A stretch of 63,667 nt of DNA, the filler included, from Choristocarpus tenellus KU-1152 (Eukaryota; Protista; Phaeophyceae): assembly GCA_964200185.2 (NCBI GenBank). It is 10 parts of 10 records of this genome, joined end to end, with 100 filler letters (N's around TTAATTAATTAA, not from the genome) between each part and the next. Parts side by side here need not be neighbours in the genome. Positions count along the whole stretch, not along the records: positions 54,059 to 63,667 come from CAXNAD020003537.1; 9 more parts are not named here. One strand, given 5' to 3'. The first letter of the stretch is position 1; each line of letters opens with the position of its first letter. The notes under the pieces are model-generated. The model saw only the letters and a program-made list of their open reading frames with translations. It had not been told where the DNA came from and did not search any database. The translations under genes and the position numbers were made by a program. Of this stretch, positions 53,959-63,667 are shown piece after piece.

Positions 53959-56484
53959 NNNNNNNNNNNNNNNNNNNNNNNNNNNNNNNNNNNNNNNNNN
54001 NNTTAATTAATTAANNNNNNNNNNNNNNNNNNNNNNNNNNNNNNNNNNNNNNNNNNNNAAGAGTTCAGTCCGGTGATTGTGATTGCCCCCTTGAGAAAAA
54101 AAGAACTTGGCACCTTTGACACTTTCACACTTACAATTTTATAAAATACAAATCACATACTTTTTTGTTCTTGAACGTTTTTATTCTTCAGAAAACAACT
54201 TTGTTTGAGCTCCGGGCGATCCGTGGGACCACCCTGAGATCCATTATCAGGAAAATCCGTGCATTGTGATTTTCGGGAGTCGTAAATCAGATCATATCCA
54301 TACTTACAATTATCTTAAATACAAAGCACATACTTAATTGATCGTGTACGTTTCCAATGTTCAGAAACCAAAAAGGTACAAAAAAACTGGCACCCTCTAA
54401 TTTTTTAGTACAAACTCCTAAATTGTTGGACATTTGTATTCTTCAAAATACTAGAGACAACAAAAAGCGGTTCTTGAGTTTCGGTGATTTCTCTTTCCGT
54501 TGACAATTGTGTTACATGAAAAAAGGAATATCGAACAGCATACGATTTCAAATTGAAAAGAGGCAGAGAGTTAACAGTTTTTTGTGATCCTTTCGTTTTG
54601 GACGCTTCACCTCAAAACCGCACCTGCGACTGGTGCTGCTAGAATATGCAACCACCCAGAGTCTGAGTCACGATGATCATGTCATAACATTGAATGAGTG
54701 CTGATAGTTGTGATATACGAGAAAGGAAAAGCAACAGCAAGTGCTGATCGTCACCTAGAAAAAAGATAAAGCTACTATTACTTAAGAGAGTACATTAGAC
54801 ACAAAAAACAATAAACAAGCACCACAGACTAAAGGCGCAGGACACTCACTGCCCAACAACAATATATCACTATTATTTTATTTTCTTCTCCACATATTTG
54901 TTATGCACTAAAATTATCTGCGGTGGTACCCGCCTGAAATGTTCCAATACTCACCTGGCAGGATTATTGTCAACACAATAATCCAAGCGCATCCAACTCT
55001 CTGCTGGGGTGAAATCTTTTGAAAAAATATAAAAAAATCAAAGGGTAATGTGCAATATATCCCTCTGCACAGAAGACTCAATGATTCTACCTACATGGCA
55101 GACAAATACGTGCAAGCCCCTCACTCATGTCAGGACGGTCAAGACGTTTCAAAAAGGATTCAAAAGAAAGTACCAGGAGAAATTTTAGTTCAAGGCTAGG
55201 ATATTCATCTAACATCGCACTAGTACCAAGTAAAACAAAGGGAAGAAGGAAACGGGATACCAGGCTGCTTACACCTAAAATCAACAGTGGAATAGCAGGG
55301 ACACAATACACAATACTCAAATATAATAATAATATCGGCCAATGGGTGATAATATCTACTCTTGTTTTTTCAAGATCCACAGTCAAAATACAACCACAAC
55401 AGATGTCCTCTCACTACCAACACCATTTCCAGATTGAGGTACATACATTGAAGCCAGTCAACACATATTATACTCATTAGGCACAGACAATGCAGTAATG
55501 TTCCTTGGGAAGACATGAACCTTCTCCCAAATTTCAAGATTTGGTACAGAAATTACTGCTTTTAATAATTTCCAGTCAAAACACATTTGTACCAATAGTA
55601 CAACAGATCACAAAAACATACCAGACACGGGAAAAGGGGACAACGAAAAACACTGTCACAAAAAAGAGGATAAAACATCTCTGGAGGAGCTCATCTTCAC
55701 CCCCAAACCCATCCAAATACAAAACACACATCAATTTTCCTCGCTGCAGTCTAGTCCTTGTTCCCCGTCAAGTCCTCCTAAAAAACAAAACAGTTCCAAA
55801 CAGATTTATATTGTTAGTGGGTGGTGATGGAAGATTTTAGAGAAACGAGAGGTTATTAAACCCATTCATCACATGCATGTGATTATTGCAACCTTGAAAT
55901 AAAATACAATTCATTCATCTGGGAAATTTTTTACATCCAGCAGGAAAGAGAACATCAAGTAAATAAACATTTCAATCAATCCAACAGCCTGCAACCGTAA
56001 AATGTGAAGGTGATAATACAAATTCACTTCGTGACCTCAGGCACTACCTCCTTAGTGTCAACAGTTTATGCTCCACTACCTAGGGACACACATCCCATCT
56101 CCTTCCAAGTCCACCACTCAAAAAACAAACAAACACCACAGTAGCCGAGAAGGTCACCACCACCACCCCAACCATAACAATCACCACCATCTCATAGCCT
56201 TGCCCACAAAAAGACAAAGATGAAAACTGAATGTAGACATTGACAGCGTAAACATCCTCCAACATTTGAAAATGTCGACGGAATCATGAGCCTCATCTTT
56301 TAAGACCAAATAATAAATGTTCACCTTAGAGGCTTCTAAATAAGTCTTTCCTAATCAAAATACAAAATCAATCCAACTAGAATATTAGTGTCACCATTTA
56401 ACGTTGGATGATACACTACAAACAATACACTTAACCACAAATTTCAAGACGACAGGTTCAAGGTATATTTCCAAAATATAACTA

Positions 56485-58713
56485 TTCAAAAAATGCAACC
56501 GTACATCAGCCGGCCTCCGTCCACCTACTGCAAATCTCATCTTTATGCCCTCTTCTTTTGTCTCATCCCCAACAACCCTTACAATATTTACAGACAAACC
56601 ATTCACATTCTCACCTGAGCTTGAAGCAAGCCACCGAATTATCCCTTCCAGGTAGCCACACCAGGGTGACTTGATCCCAATGTTTCTTCAGCTATCCTTA
56701 TCACCTTACGGTACAGTTTCTCCGCCTCGTCATATTTACCCTGCATTATCAAAGTCACGAAACAACACATGTCAGTGAATCATACAAATCATACTCAGTG
56801 ACTCACCAAGTACAGGTACTTTCATGCTTATTTCAACACACGCCTGTTTCACACTGGATATCCACACACTACAACCATTCAACAAATGCAAACGTACATC
56901 AACCAGCCTCCGTCCACCTACTGCAAATCTCATCTTTAGAGCCTCTTCTTGTATCTCATCCCAACAACCCTTACAATATTTACAGACAAACCATTCACAT
57001 TCTCACCTGAGCTTGAAGCAAACCATCAAAGTTCCCCTGGAAAGCAGCCACATGAGGGTGACTAGATCCCAATGTTTCTTCAACCATCCTTATCACCTTC
57101 CGGTACAGTTTCTCCGTCTCATCATATTTACCCTGCATTATCAAAGCCACAAAACAACACACGTCAGTGCATCATACAACTCATACTCAGTGACTCACCA
57201 AGTACAGGTACTTTCATGCTTATTTCAACACACGCCTGTTTCACACTGGATATCCACACACTACAACCATTCAACAAATGCAAACGTACATCAACCAGCC
57301 TCCGTCCACCTACTGCAAATCTCATCTTTATGCCCTCTTCTTTTGTCTCATCCCCAACAACCCTTACAATATTTACAGACAAACCATTCACATTCTCACC
57401 TGAGCTTGATGCAAACCAGCCAAGTTTCCCTTCCTGGTAGCCACACCAGGGTGACTTGATCCCAATGTTTCTTCACCCATCCTTATCACCTCACGGTACA
57501 GTTTCTCCTCCTCTTCATATTAACCCTGCATTATCAAATCTACAAAACAACACATATCAGTGCATCACACAAATCATACTCAGTGACTCATCAAGTATAG
57601 GTACTTTCATGCTTATTTCAACACACGCCTCTTTCACACTCGATATCCACAAACTACAACCATTCAACAAATGCAAACGTACATCACCCAGCCTCCGTCC
57701 ACCTACTGCAAATCTCATCTTCAGAGCCTCTTCTTGTGTCTCATCCCCAACCACCCTTACAATATTTACAAATCATTCACATTCTCACCTGAGCTTCAAG
57801 CAACCCAGCCAATTTTCCCTTCCTGGTAGAAACACCAGTGTGGCTTGATCCCAATGTTTCTTCAGCTATCCTTATCACCTTACGGTACAGTTTCTCCGCC
57901 TCGTCATATTTACCCTGCATTATCAAAGCCACAAAACAACACATGTCAGTGCATCACACAAATCATACTCAGTGACTCACCAAGTACAGGTACGTTCATG
58001 CTTATTTCAACACACGCCTGTTTCACACCGGATATCCACACACTACAACCATTCAACAAATTCAAACGTACATCACCCAGCCTCCGTCCACCTACTGCAA
58101 ATCTCATCCTTATAGCCTCTTCTTGTGTCTCATTCCCAACAACCCTTACAATATTTACATACCATTCACATTCTCATCTGAGCTTGAAGCAAATTAGCCA
58201 AGTTTCCCTTCCTGGTAGCCAGATCAGGGTGACTAGATCCCAATGTTTCTTCACCCATCCTTATCACCTCACGGTACAGTTTCTCCGCCTCGTTATATTT
58301 ACCCTGCATTATCAAAGCCACGAAACAACACATGTCAGTGAATCATACAAATCATACTCAGTGACTCACCAAGTACAGGTACTTTCATGCTTATTTCAAC
58401 ACACGCCTGTTTCACACTGGATATCCACACACTATAACAACCATTCAACAAATGCAAACGTACATCAGCCAGCCTCCATCTACCTACCGCAAATCTCATC
58501 TTTATGTCCTCTTCTTGTGTCTAATCCTCAACTACCCTTAAAATATTCACATACAAACCATTCACATTCTCACCTGAGCTTGAAGCAACCCAGCAAAGTT
58601 TCCCTGGAAACCAGCCACAGTAGGGTGACTTGATCCCAACGTTTCTTCACCCATCCTTATCACCTCACGGAAGAGATTCTCGGACTCGTCATATTTACCC
58701 TGCATTATCAAAG
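56485..58713 (-). repeat. Tandem array of ~390-bp exon+intron units (about 5.7 copies, six exons)
   Basis: Exon-to-exon periods are 396, 389, 389, 393 and 392 bp. Introns are near-identical between units. Confidence 0.97.
56615..58699 (-). CDS. Six 126-nt phase-0 exons, each encoding one 42-aa kinesin-light-chain-type TPR: 58699-58574, 58303-58178, 57914-57789, 57525-57400, 57132-57007, 56740-56615 (three are disabled)
   Basis: Each exon is bounded by TGCAG| and |GTGAGA (ATGAGA in the second). An example translation is GKYDESENLFREVIRMGEETLGSSHPTVAGFQGNFAGLLQAQ, with the hallmark GKYxEAExLY...LGxxHPxVA...NLA. Confidence 0.92.
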
Positions 58714-60490
58714 CAATTGAGCTTTTATGTTAGCGGACCAACTAGGTCATCCTTAAATTTCTGCAGATTTATTTTATGTTACATCAATTGTCAGGTGAGA
58801 CCACGGCATGATAAGTATGATTTTCACCAAGCATACGATGCAGTATCACTCCATGACGTTGAGTCATCATTGCAGATAAAGGATGATTCTCTCCAACGCC
58901 AACTTCATCTGTCGTCTTGGTTGAAGTAGTGACCAATTTAGCAGCTTCATTGTATTTACCCTATGTAGAAAATCGGGAGTTAGGGGGTATGTTAGTAGAT
59001 CATAATTAACTATAATTGGAGCATTGGTGATAATTGTTACATACATTCAACTGCATACAGTTGATGGAGAATATACAATCGAGTTGATGTAGGTCTGTCC
59101 GTCTTCTTTCGGAAATATGCATTATATTTATGCGCTCCCTAATATTCATGTTGTCATGGACAACGGATCTACCTGAGAACTATTTCCACCATGGCAACTT
59201 CAAGCAATCTATTATGAACAGCTTTGTTGACAGAAAAAATGTGCAATATTTTTTCAAGAGGTAACTGGTTATGTGATGTAGAACTAGATACAGACTTCAA
59301 GGCTTTACAGCAAAACAGACCAAGGAACACTACCTATTCTATATACTTCAGACCTTTTACTTGTCGACAGAAACTGTACTATGTAACTCTTGTAGGATCA
59401 GGGCACAGGTCATTAACTTTGTTTTGTTCAATGCATTCTTGCCTATCTCTTCCTGATTGCAAGATATCTTAACCTCTGGGGAAGAACAGTACATCATCTA
59501 CAAAAACCTCAAAATGTTAGAGCACTTCATCTTGAAAAGGTTGATGGGTTTAATTTAGAGGTCGGCTTTGAAGTTGTGTTCACTTTATATACATTAACCC
59601 TAACCTTAACCACACCCTTGAAGGCCCAGAGCAAGCTTTGATGGGGATGGGGAAAGGACATACAAAGGCATTGCAATCATCAATCCTCATAATGCCATGT
59701 AATTATTATAAAATATATTTTGATACCTAGGAGACTAGCTGTAAGGGAGTTTCAATTATCATCCCTCCAGCACACACCCTGTAAGTGTCACAACAATTTC
59801 TGCTGGGGACTGGCGATGGGTATTCAAAGCAGAATATATAGTGTGGTTAGGAGGTGTTGAGCAACATTACGGTGCCCACATCCAACCTCAAGAGAACCAA
59901 AATGCACAGAAAACAATGGGGGCGCAGTTTCCTCATTTTCCTCAGAATATGATCAGATGTATCTCAGTGTGGGTTAAGTTTTCAAATGCCTAGGTTTGGA
60001 AGTTTGGTCAGAAGTGATCGCTATATATCTCTACATGGGAATGTATTTCTGTAGGGCTGATGATTACAAGGTTTGATCAATATATCGTATGAAGCAAAAC
60101 TGTACTTGATCAGATGTATGGAGGTCGACTCCAGCCTCGTCCGTACTGACACAAAGGAGGTATGGCATGGAAGATTCACTGAAAACAACTAATTTGTCTG
60201 GCAAAAACATTTTTACATGTGAAACAATGAATCACCATAGGCCAATTATTTGCCTTTGTGTTACAAAAATATGAAACCTTACCATTTGTTCTTAACATGA
60301 ATGAAGTCATTTGTTACAGAAAAACTCAAGTCAGCACGGTTTGGCACCCAAAGATCCCTCACAATATTACACATTTCGAAACATACCTAATGCTGTAGTT
60401 TTCAAGGTTGTAACACATGTCATTGAGTGTCAAGACTAAGCAGGAATGCATTGTCATAGCAATATTGTACACCAAATATTTCATCCTCAC

Positions 60491-61071
60491 TTGTGCAATC
60501 ACTGAAGGAACCATGTTACAGACTGTTTTTACAACAGCAATTACAGCTCTTCGAATGTCAGATCCTGAAGTCTTGGCTTTCTCCAATTGATCAAGTTTTG
60601 TTTGGTGTACCTGGAAGAGCACAGAAGGTACCAGGAGCACATGTTACCTTTAAGCCAAGTCAAACTGTGCATTTCGTAACAACAAAACAAGTTCAATTTC
60701 CACACCTTTTTCCACTCCTCCACTGATTCGTTGTATCTTCCAACCATGTGCAGTGTTGCTGACAACGTATCCCCCAGTCCATTCCAGTTCTGCTTCCCAA
60801 GAAGGATCATTTTCTCAGTGACCTCATTACTCCAGTTACGGAAAAGATGAGAAGCCTCCATTGAATGTGTGACCTTCAGTTCTCTTGCCCACTCATATAC
60901 TTTGTGTGACTCTTCCTTGAGGTCATAGAAACCTTTCAGATGTAGCTGGACCTCGCACAGGTGCCCCGGACCACGGTCTTGTGAGATGACCATGTTCATT
61001 TTCACATCCCGATACCCTCCTGGTGTGTAGCTGAACCGGAATCCACTGCTCACTCTTTTCACATGCAACTC
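60491..61071 (-). CDS. RelA/SpoT-like nucleotidyltransferase domain exon (61071-60706) plus a helical linker exon (60610-60491); likely the same gene as the TPR array
   Basis: ELHVKRVSSGF...GGYRDVKMNMV...HLCEVQLHLKGFYDLKEESHKVYEWAREL resembles the RSH synthetase GY(R/Q)(D/S), E(V/I)Q and H..Y motifs. Both exons (366 and 120 nt) are phase 0 with canonical AG and GT sites. Confidence 0.78.
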
Positions 61072-61883
61072 CTAAGAATATAGCGAAGGAGAGCGAAGAT
61101 AATACCTGGCAAGAGCGCGTCTGGGGCACTATTGCAGAGTGGCGTTGAGGTGCTAACTGAGGGAACAATGACAATCAATAAAATAATAAACAATTACCGT
61201 GCATCTGGGGTCTTGCTCATATAAAAAGGAAGAACAGAGATGGCAACAACAACAAAATAGAAAGGGGAACACAAGGTAACAGTGGAACGCACTTGATGCA
61301 AGTTCCGAAGTAACTTGGATGACGTGTGCTATGATGTTCCTGTGTGTGATGTGGATCAACTGAATATCAACTGATGCTATACTTCTATCTACTGTCATCG
61401 ATGTGATGATGAGTTGGAATGCGCAATAAATAAATGAACACTAACAACCAGTGCAGTGCACCAATCAATAGTCAGTACAAGCTGGTAGTGTGTGTCTCAT
61501 ATCAACAGGAAACAAATGAGTAGCCTATGTTTTAACATCTGCAAAATATCAGAGGACAATATTTTGTTATTATGCCCTCTGATATTTTGCAGATGTGTCA
61601 GGGTGAAAACAAATGAAAAGTATACATATGTCAGTATAAGCCCTAAAGAAATAAAATATCATTAATGTGAAAACACTATAAAGCACTGTAAGTGTGAAAA
61701 CCACCACTAATCTATCAGGTACTTCACCATTATCAATATTGTACTGCCTTCCTGTGCTTCCCATCTACCTACTCCTGCACCCCGGGGGGGGGAGCTAGGG
61801 AGGCATCCCAAGAATCCAACAAACCCCTCCATGCCCATCTCCCTGGTGACTCTAGTTTAAAGCGCACGGCATGTTGAGACAAT

Positions 61884-62142
61884 GAGTGAAAGTATCTTAG
61901 AGGGTACGAGTTTTTCCCTGTTTGTCCATTTGGGGCTTGGCTTCTCACCGGTATTTTGATTACATTTTCCTACTCCAAAATGTTTCGGAGTAGGTAAAAT
62001 GTATACATTTTGAAAAGGTGTGTCTGGAACATGGACATTGACACATCCTAACAAACACGATAGCGAAAATTACATCGAAAACGCAACATTGGATTTTGGG
62101 TCCCAGTTGGATACGGCTGTACCCTCTAAGATATTTTGGCTC
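61884..62142 (+). mobile_element. MITE family A, copy 6
   Basis: Collinear with 21923-22181, both TIRs present. Confidence 0.9.
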
Positions 62143-62214
62143 AAAATGCCACTTGCATAGTCACCGGAACAATTTGGCGTAGCCGGTATTTAACTACTCC
62201 TTTCCTACAATATC

Positions 62215-62347
62215 CTCCAGCTCCTCTCCCCCCTGCCATGTGAGCAGCCAGCGCATCCAGGAAGCATTCCGCTTACTTGCCAAGGCGTCCAAAACTTTCC
62301 ACCGCAAAGGTGTTGAGGTTATAACTACGAGGATCAAAGGGGCCCTC
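62215..62347 (-). mobile_element. Truncated copy of the RLE retrotransposon 3' end
   Basis: The reverse complement tttgatcctcgtagttataacctcaacacctttgcggtggaaagttttggacgccttggcaag matches 39191-39255. Confidence 0.85.
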
Positions 62348-62589
62348 GTATTGGGTATATTATTTTGGGCAATAACGACGACATTTCCTGAAGTTGTGTA
62401 GGAAAAAGAAGAAGCATAGAGTAAGGAAAACAACAGACGGAGCAAAATAGTGTAAAAGAAGGGACATGGTAAAATAAACACAACAAAGCATTACTCTTGT
62501 AATAGAGAGGTTGATCACATACTCCAACAAGGGTTGTAGTCTATCTCAAAACAATAAACAACTTCAATTGAAAATGTTCCTAGCCATAC

Positions 62590-62880
62590 ACTGTGTGGGC
62601 AATCAAGTCCACGAGTCAGTCAAACGCCTCCTAGCCGACTAACCTGGTGCCTCTGGTTTAAAACACATGACGCGCCTGGAGATTGCAATTTGAGGAGTTC
62701 TTTCAGAGGTGCGCGTTCACTGACCCTTTCCAACTGAAGCCCTCTGCCCCCGTACCCCCCACCATGTAATTCACCAGCTCTTCCAGAAATTGCTCTGGCC
62801 TATGTGCCTAGGCACCTGAAGCTTTTCACCACGAAGGTGTTGAGGTTAAAACTACTACGAGGGTCATAAGATCCCTTGTA
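62590..62880 (-). mobile_element. Second truncated copy of the RLE retrotransposon 3' end
   Basis: The reverse complement gaccctcgtagtagttttaacctcaacaccttcgtggtgaaaagcttc...ttctggaagagctgg...gggggg matches 39190-39440. Confidence 0.8.
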
Positions 62881-63018
62881 GTAGTTAGTTGCACTTTCGG
62901 ACCTCGATTGCATTCATACGTAATAATACTTGTTCTACACTCGAGCACTCCAATTCAAAACATACGTCACACATGTACATTTTGAGGCCTGCAACGATAC
63001 TCAACAAGACGAAAATAA

Positions 63019-63028
63019 CATACATACA

Positions 63029-63059
<31 letters not shown>

Positions 63060-63089
63060 ACGCGCGCGTGCGCGCGCACGCACACACAC
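63019..63089. repeat. Compound (CA)n/(CG)n alternating purine-pyrimidine microsatellite
   Basis: About 70 nt of uninterrupted RY alternation, including (CG)6. Confidence 0.9.
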
Positions 63090-63667
63090 CAAATCCTCGA
63101 GAGTAGTATATGTTCCCTTGTAACAGTCCAGTCCGTAATGCGCATGGCATACACTTCATAATATATACTTTCCCTCTGTTCGATACTGAACAGATGAAGT
63201 AGAGCTAGTGATGTCAAGCTAGTAACAACAATAAAACAATAGTCGAGAGGAAAACATGGCAAGTATGTGTATTTACATTTCATTATGTTACAATTGTGTT
63301 GTGTTGTCAAAGGTATGAAGTGTTTCTCTAGACACTTATCGTTTCCTTGCAGAGCAATTACAGTAGGAACTTGACGATATTGGCGGCGTTAATGACCTTC
63401 TGTCCCATATTATTCGATGCAAATAGTTTGTAGTTGCTGGGTCTTGGGGTACCTTTCTTCAACTGAGCATACACAACTATTCTGAACAAATCTGGAAATA
63501 TACTGTGTTGTTCCCCCCCCAAAAAAATATAATTTTATGGGTACTTGCTATTAATATTGCTCATATGAGGAATTTCTTCCACAAGGCAAATGGATGTGTG
63601 AGGTGGTGATAATTGGGTCAAAGTATCTGGGGGGGGGGTGTCGGCATCCGTTTTTCACCTTTTTTTC

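Follow-up and report, generated by a model that had tools for sequence, protein, structure and literature searches.

CapRel is a bacterial protein of anti-phage defence in which a toxic small alarmone synthetase (toxSAS) is fused to a sensor and acts as a tRNA pyrophosphokinase (PDB 7ztb). Synthetases of the Tas1/Apk branch make pApp, ppApp and pppApp and deplete ATP, and MuF-fused Apk2 proteins are (p)ppApp-synthetase toxins (PMC10083569). Among eukaryotes, fungal NOD-like receptors (NLRs) that carry a RelA_SpoT effector domain at the N-terminus have been described (Dyrka et al. 2014, PMC4986451). The NB-ARC-TPR genes of Ectocarpus encode one 42-aa tetratricopeptide repeat (TPR) per 126-nt phase-0 exon; some of their exons are inactivated, pseudogenes occur, and birth-and-death rates are high (Zambounis et al. 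2012, PMC3341825); ‘other repetitive TPR loci’ in Ectocarpus are mentioned there without further characterisation. Here we describe a locus of the early-branching brown alga Choristocarpus tenellus in which an exon resembling RelA/SpoT-homologue (RSH) synthetases precedes an array of TPR exons. The window is a stretch of 63,667 nucleotides made of ten joined parts, and the part examined, positions 54059-63667 (9,609 bases), is a whole contig of assembly GCA_964200185.2. The locus is probably a 5′-truncated, decaying paralogue, either a gene fragment or a pseudogene, of a brown-algal multigene family.

The 366-nt exon encodes a 122-aa product, ELHVKRVSSGFRFSYTPGGYRDVKMN...GHLCEVQLHL...SHKVYEWAREL, with the pattern VKRVSSGF-x6-GGYRDVKMN-x11-LCEVQLH-x10-SHKVYEWAREL. 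Taken alone, this product has no usable match in Pfam, NCBIfam or PDB sequences. The Pfam family RelA_SpoT (PF04607) is not matched by it at E ≤ 10, the sole NCBIfam traces are XopAD/skwp (E 0.047) and PRK09169 (0.083), and a protein-atlas feature comparison scored 0.82, a lead only. When 1.84 billion cluster representatives were searched with phmmer, 148 relatives appeared at E<1e-3, 49 of them below 1e-10. In most of the long relatives about 180 residues stand ahead of the match, which spans roughly residues 185-295.

Domain segments from 45 family members were aligned (alignment A1). D77, G124, E145 and H161 are invariant in these 45 domains, at least 90% of which also have K54, K62, R80, Y125, R126, D127, H142, Q147, Y164 and R168. 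We take this conserved order to be that of the RSH synthetase motifs, which starts with basic residues for the phosphates of ATP and continues with the Asp that binds Mg, the GY loop, the E.Q motif with its catalytic Glu, and H..Y. Against PDB sequences, the A1 profile best matches Tas1 (6ox6), the type VI (p)ppApp-synthetase toxin of P. aeruginosa, at E 2.7e-15, followed by RelP/YwaC (1.2e-7), RelQ/YjbM (about 1e-4) and SaSAS (2.2e-4), and the synthetase motifs line up in these alignments. The C-terminal motifs GGYRD, GHLCEVQLH and SHKVYEWAR are present in the window exon and align with those of Tas1 and RelP, and the exon keeps all of the family-invariant residues that belong to the C-terminal half.

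An AlphaFold2 model was built on A1 for an Ectocarpus homologue (P0008:95-321), not for the window fragment, with a predicted local distance difference test (pLDDT) score of 86. The homologue model has the alpha/beta synthetase fold with a central mixed sheet. Its best 50 Foldseek matches in the PDB are all RelQ, RelP, SaSAS, Tas1, CapRel, Rel or SpoT at probability 1.00, with a target template-modelling (TM) score of up to 0.68. Because of the profile matches and the unanimous Foldseek matches, the RSH-synthetase assignment is sound at the family level, as judged from profile and model, and among RSH synthetases the algal family is closest to the Tas1/Apk branch. The data support that the window exon encodes the C-terminal half of a true synthetase-like domain of the RelA/SpoT-homologue kind. 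It could be argued from the blank searches with the exon alone and from its atlas score of only 0.82 that the GGYRD/EVQ/H..Y likeness is a chance match and the exon unrelated to RSH. We find this hardly credible, as it is refuted by the motif-aligned profile match to Tas1 and by the unanimous fold search; moreover, members of Guillardia theta are already named ‘RelA/SpoT domain-containing protein’ in UniRef.

The RelA_SpoT model gives weak matches, below its cut-off, in 18 of the 45 A1 members (best 6.9e-5); for example, P0051 reaches 19.7 and P0004 16.8 of the 27 bits set as the gathering score. The NCBIfam model of the XopAD/skwp type III effector is weakly matched by 15/45 members at model positions ~2000-2103 of 2133, and PRK09169 by 14/45. 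These bacterial effectors may therefore have an RSH-like relative of the domain as their C-terminal module. PADLOC models yielded nothing meaningful with the 45 members, three of which matched PDC-S33 at 0.0014.

With Tas1/Apk1 and Apk2 the family shares aligned LK..R...K, D..R, GY, E.Q and H..YE motifs as well as the best profile match, and a MuF-domain protein from a metagenome, which resembles Apk2, bears the domain at its C-terminal end. This protein (P0117, 2115 aa) is a phage Mu F-like protein with two domain copies, one of them at that end. However, the bacterial and phage toxins have PAAR or MuF delivery modules and immunity proteins, whereas the algal proteins are intracellular and eukaryotic, end in a C-terminal TPR array, and contain only TPR families besides the domain. 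RelQ/SAS1, RelP/SAS2 and SaSAS have the same fold (Foldseek probability 1.00, TM 0.52-0.68) and the same order of catalytic motifs, but they are stand-alone bacterial proteins at 12-20% identity, and the algal family stays under the RelA_SpoT gathering score. CapRel (Foldseek ranks 27, 41 and 48) likewise unites in one chain a toxic RSH-type synthetase at the N-terminus with a sensing part at the C-terminus, although it is bacterial and its sensor is a small pseudo-zinc-finger domain instead of a TPR array.

Full-length brown-algal members are P0006 (Pylaiella), P0007 and P0012 (E. fasciculatus), P0027 (Ectocarpus sp. CCAP 1310/34) and P0040 (Ectocarpus sp. 4). They have a helical N-terminus of ~90 aa, an RSH-like domain reaching ~residue 300, and TPR_10/TPR_12 repeats from ~330-370. 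The domain measures ~210 aa in intact members and is followed by a short helical linker; only ~40-70 aa separate its end from the first TPR. Pfam finds no NB-ARC, NACHT or other nucleoside triphosphatase (NTPase) family in nine full-length or near-full-length members and the 311-aa partial P0004. A second search gave 56 relatives from brown algae, full-length and between 348 and 1,076 aa long, whose precomputed Pfam lists contain no NTPase and no RSH, only TPR and other helical-repeat families. The relatives come from Ectocarpus species, Pylaiella, Hapterophycus, Laminaria, Ascophyllum and Sphacelaria, and from Discosporangium in a separate search, with many paralogues per species (at least 12 in E. 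fasciculatus). One brown-algal relative is named ‘kinesin light chain-like protein’ and others are filed as ‘unnamed protein product’. Beyond brown algae and Guillardia, the domain occurs in Hanusia, in a foraminifer, in metagenomic TPR, leucine-rich repeat (LRR) or Arm proteins, and in a phage MuF protein.

One 42-aa TPR per phase-0 exon and copy-number variation are both found in the family. Thus a synthetase followed by a TPR array with no NTPase is supported, from sequence comparison, as a real and recurrent architecture with variable repeat number. The fungal RelA_SpoT NLRs are comparable in being eukaryotic, in combining an RSH-synthetase-like effector with a repeat array (WD40, TPR or ankyrin), and in being multi-copy and variable with a proposed role in nonself recognition (PMC4986451), but they have a central NACHT or NB-ARC NTPase and the brown-algal family has none. 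The Ectocarpus NB-ARC-TPR genes have the same 42-aa TPR unit in single 126-nt phase-0 exons and also inactivated exons, but their N-terminal module is an NB-ARC NTPase, whereas that of the present family is an RSH-like nucleotidyltransferase domain. A full-text literature search found no paper tying brown algae, alarmone synthetases and TPRs together, a blank that is not proof of absence. What is new is an RSH effector with a TPR sensor in eukaryotes without a STAND (signal transduction ATPases with numerous domains) NTPase; RSH-effector receptors and one-TPR-per-exon genes have already been published.

Several statements of an earlier note on this DNA can be judged at the level of the family. 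It had proposed a RelA/SpoT-like synthetase, which the family profile and the fold search bear out, and a synthetase lying directly before the TPR array with no NTPase between them, which is what the full-length brown-algal homologues have. RelQ and CapRel, with which it suggested a comparison, are both matched by the Ectocarpus model. It had named invariant single-copy genes as grounds for dropping its proposal; because the family has many copies that differ in repeat number, those grounds do not hold. It knew of no description of this architecture as an immune system, but the idea has a precedent in the published fungal NLRs with a RelA_SpoT effector, though these have a nucleotide-binding and oligomerization (NOD) module.

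At the locus itself (Table 1), where G+C is 37-45%, all of the described exons lie on the minus strand with canonical AG acceptors, and, the 129-nt linker exon aside, a GT donor follows every listed exon but TPR exon 2. Each of the six TPR exons is 126 nt long, in phase 0, and encodes one 42-aa unit. All four TPR exons tested pass the TPR_10 gathering score of 27.5 bits in Pfam, with 28.1-41.5 bits. The tandem array, alike at 90% including the introns, is far beyond chance, and its six TPR exons are recent duplicates.

Table 1 Features of the RSH-TPR locus in window positions
Feature	Positions	Strand	Basis or remark
RSH-like exon, 366 nt	61071-60706	minus	AG acceptor, GT donor; predicted C-terminal half of RSH-synthetase-like domain
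Helical linker exon, 120 nt, phase 0	60610-60491	minus	65% identity to P0004 residues 176-201
TPR-like linker exon, 129 nt	58960-58832	minus	homologous to P0004 residues 202-245; donor CT
TPR exon 1, intact, GT donor	58699-58574	minus	TPR_10 1.7e-7
TPR exon 2, frame open, donor AT not GT	58303-58178	minus	TPR_10 1.1e-10
TPR exon 3, intact	57914-57789	minus	TPR_10 2.3e-7
TPR exon 4, in-frame TAA at codon 2	57525-57400	minus	sequence reading
TPR exon 5, intact	57132-57007	minus	TPR_10 2e-6
TPR exon 6, in-frame TAA at codon 34	56740-56615	minus	sequence reading
Tandem array, 389-bp unit (TPR exon and its intron)	56480-58714		5.7 copies, 90% identity
Breakpoint and high-copy dispersed repeat	61108-62400		occupies the place of the paralogues' N-terminal catalytic exon

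The window copy was compared with two paralogues from its own genome. L001 is ~96% identical across exons and introns, and L003, which encodes P0004, has 67% protein identity. Both loci carry the N-terminal half of the domain directly upstream of the C-half exon, at most ~130 nt away; in L001 it is encoded by the open reading frame (ORF) 994-1425 (...VKAPLKTKESILRKANMPWAGGNLRLVTDMARISVVC...). The window DNA is homologous to L001 only from 61107, 36 nt upstream of the 366-nt exon. A tblastn search with four proteins that contain the N-half, and with the N-half ORF of L001, finds the N-half nowhere on the contig at E ≤ 10, and a six-frame reading of the 2.6 kb upstream reveals no N-half exon. 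Thus the N-terminal ATP/Mg motifs conserved in the family (K...K and D..R) are absent from the contig. Contig pieces from three sequencing runs pile up by thousands on 61050-62400, where hundreds of differing flanks meet at 61883/61884, and window 62142-61883 recurs at L001:8800-9059 with 84% identity.

Downstream, four of seven exons carry lesions, these being the stops in TPR exons 4 and 6 and the lost donors of TPR exon 2 and the linker exon, the latter reading ATG/CTTGGT in the window vs ATG/GTTTGT in L001. Over 615 coding nt the two copies differ by 18.5 nonsynonymous and 2.5 synonymous changes, a ratio of nonsynonymous to synonymous divergence (pN/pS) of ~2, which argues that no purifying selection acts. 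The deposited gene model (P0001, ‘unnamed protein product’, 100% identical) has 181 aa, starts inside the 366-nt exon and ends by intron read-through. The absent N-half, two stops, two lost donors, the pN/pS and the 181-aa model together are why we regard the locus as a truncated, decaying duplicate. Because the N-terminal catalytic half is absent, an active enzyme could not be made from what the contig contains.

Alternatively, the gene could be intact but split by the assembly, with a repeat or transposon in the short intron ahead of the 366-nt exon and the N-half beyond the contig end, so that skipping of the lesioned exons would yield an RSH-TPR protein with three or four TPRs. Such a gene would agree with a contig end in repetitive sequence 2.6 kb upstream, with exons that are all in phase 0, with spliced contigs (described below) in which the helical exon is followed by the linker exon in some cases and by TPR exon 1 in others, and with a C-half that retains every conserved residue. 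Yet the paralogues have their N-half within ~130 nt where at least 2.6 kb of unrelated repeats is found here, and contigs of other repeat copies continue past 61110 with a common flank, indicating a breakpoint and not a clean insertion. Considering also the four independent exon lesions, the lack of purifying selection relative to L001, and a deposited annotation of a 181-aa fragment only, we judge an intact, split gene improbable.

Splicing was observed in assembled contigs from three coded sequencing runs of one study, of which X1 and X2 behave like DNA contigs and X3 holds spliced contigs. The X3 spliced contigs have minus-strand GT..AG joints at 60706 to 60610, 60491 to 58960 and 60491 to 58699. 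One X3 contig of 569 nt leaves the window stretch at the 61071 acceptor and therefore runs on into an upstream exon. Compared with the window copy they are 1-5 letters off, which is close to the difference counts of L001 without equalling them; between the window and L001 there are nine diagnostic differences in the RSH exon and two in the helical exon. The X3 contigs show the predicted splicing of family members, in which the linker exon is used alternatively.

Reading the window locus as a decaying copy, and its intact relatives as sensor-enzymes, has several points to contend with. The X3 joints belong to the family, so expression of the window copy is neither shown nor excluded. A pN/pS of ~2 on 21 changes fits diversifying selection too. 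The lesioned exons are skippable, all being in phase 0, and the joints from 60491 to 58960 and to 58699 both occur. Upstream, the contig runs out within repeats 2.6 kb from the exon, and an N-half exon may lie beyond. As to the enzyme, no family member tested reaches the Pfam gathering score of RelA_SpoT, and the enzyme activity, product, ligand and immune role are putative.

The claims that the earlier note had made for the locus fared variously. Its 366-nt, 120-nt and six 126-nt minus-strand exons are all present where it placed them, though its exon list missed the 129-nt linker exon, and its motif string is right but for a first spacer of six residues instead of five. That any combination of exons splices in frame holds insofar as all are in phase 0, but the coding integrity is broken by the stops and lost donors. 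The junction of 60491 to 58699, which it had asked to be checked in transcripts, is seen in X3 spliced contigs, at the family level in copies 1-5 letters off the window. Of the two Pfam matches it anticipated, TPR_10 was passed by 4/4 exons tested, and RelA_SpoT fell short of its gathering score in the family members and did not match the 366-nt exon. It had failed to locate the N-terminal part, as did our tblastn search, and its suspicion of decay agrees with the missing N-half, two stops and two lost donors. An enzyme active from this very locus, on the other hand, is contradicted by the absent catalytic half and the four exon lesions.

The locus can also be regarded as no protein-coding gene in its own right but a store of TPR and domain exons that enter intact paralogues by shuffling or gene conversion, a role proposed for inactivated LRR/TPR exons of Ectocarpus. 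The 389-bp units are 90% identical and their number differs between paralogues, 5.7 in the window vs only ~2.7 in L001 (L001 3822-4866), and inactivated exons with high birth-and-death rates are known from the NB-ARC-TPR and ROCO families (Zambounis et al., PMC3341825). However, ordinary tandem duplication followed by decay accounts for the same data, and we consider a reservoir very unlikely.

For intact members we propose a mechanism by analogy with the known toxins. The TPR array would be the ligand sensor and a probable inhibitor, holding the synthetase off. Ligand binding would free the domain to move pyrophosphate from ATP to a nucleotide 3′-OH, the acceptor most likely being adenine nucleotides as in Tas1/Apk, or RNA as in CapRel. 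ATP depletion or a translation block would follow, leading to cell arrest or death. Intact members may thus be ligand-gated 3′-pyrophosphokinases with a putative immune role and product. In a complex prediction of intramolecular docking, P0006 residues 1-300 vs 301-628 scored 0.33 (mark 0.34). The broadest form of the proposal is that brown algae, cryptophytes, foraminifera and uncultured protists possess NTPase-less single-chain sensors, in which an exon-shuffled TPR array gates a Tas1-like adenosine/guanosine 3′-pyrophosphokinase. Recognition would cause a flood of (p)ppApp/(p)ppGpp or tRNA pyrophosphorylation, stopping or killing the infected cell, as a eukaryotic counterpart of CapRel/toxSAS, with degenerate loci serving as exon reservoirs. 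We hold this broad form tentatively, as possible though on the unlikely side.

Some further observations concern the array and its surroundings. Each TPR exon is followed by GTGAGAATGTGA at the donor, e.g., at 58573-58562. A retained intron adds only V-R-M and a stop, so any TPR unit can serve as the terminal exon; many deposited homologue models terminate by intron read-through, e.g., ...QVRM or ...QVNR. Antisense to the array, two stop-free plus-strand ORFs of 211 and 262 aa (window 56824-58633), rich in Ser, Thr, His and Pro, recur with the 389-bp unit and match no family. The strong C-over-G skew of the repeat (~-0.5 on the plus strand) most likely produces these ORFs as an artefact. The upstream repeat contains, in two places, degenerate pieces of ORFs such as FDPRSYNLNTFAVESFGRLGK that resemble relics of transposons. 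A high-copy repeat signal is also found at ~62800-62870, and a (GT)n/(GC)n microsatellite lies at ~63040-63100 on the upstream side of the contig. On the L001 contig, a gene with LRR_8/LRR_4 repeats (L001:8563-11927) is located ~4 kb from this closest RSH-TPR paralogue, so two kinds of repeat-receptor-like genes adjoin there.

As one of the dead copies of its family, the window locus would matter only as evidence of birth-and-death turnover. The family itself comprises dozens of brown-algal proteins that carry an N-terminal RSH-like domain absent from their Pfam lists. To our knowledge, alarmone-type chemistry has so far been met in bacterial toxins, toxin-antitoxin defence and organelles. If the intact members are active, alarmone-type or ATP-depleting nucleotide chemistry would enter eukaryotic cytosolic sensing, and the family would be the third exon-per-repeat candidate receptor family of brown algae, beside ROCO-LRR and NB-ARC-TPR.

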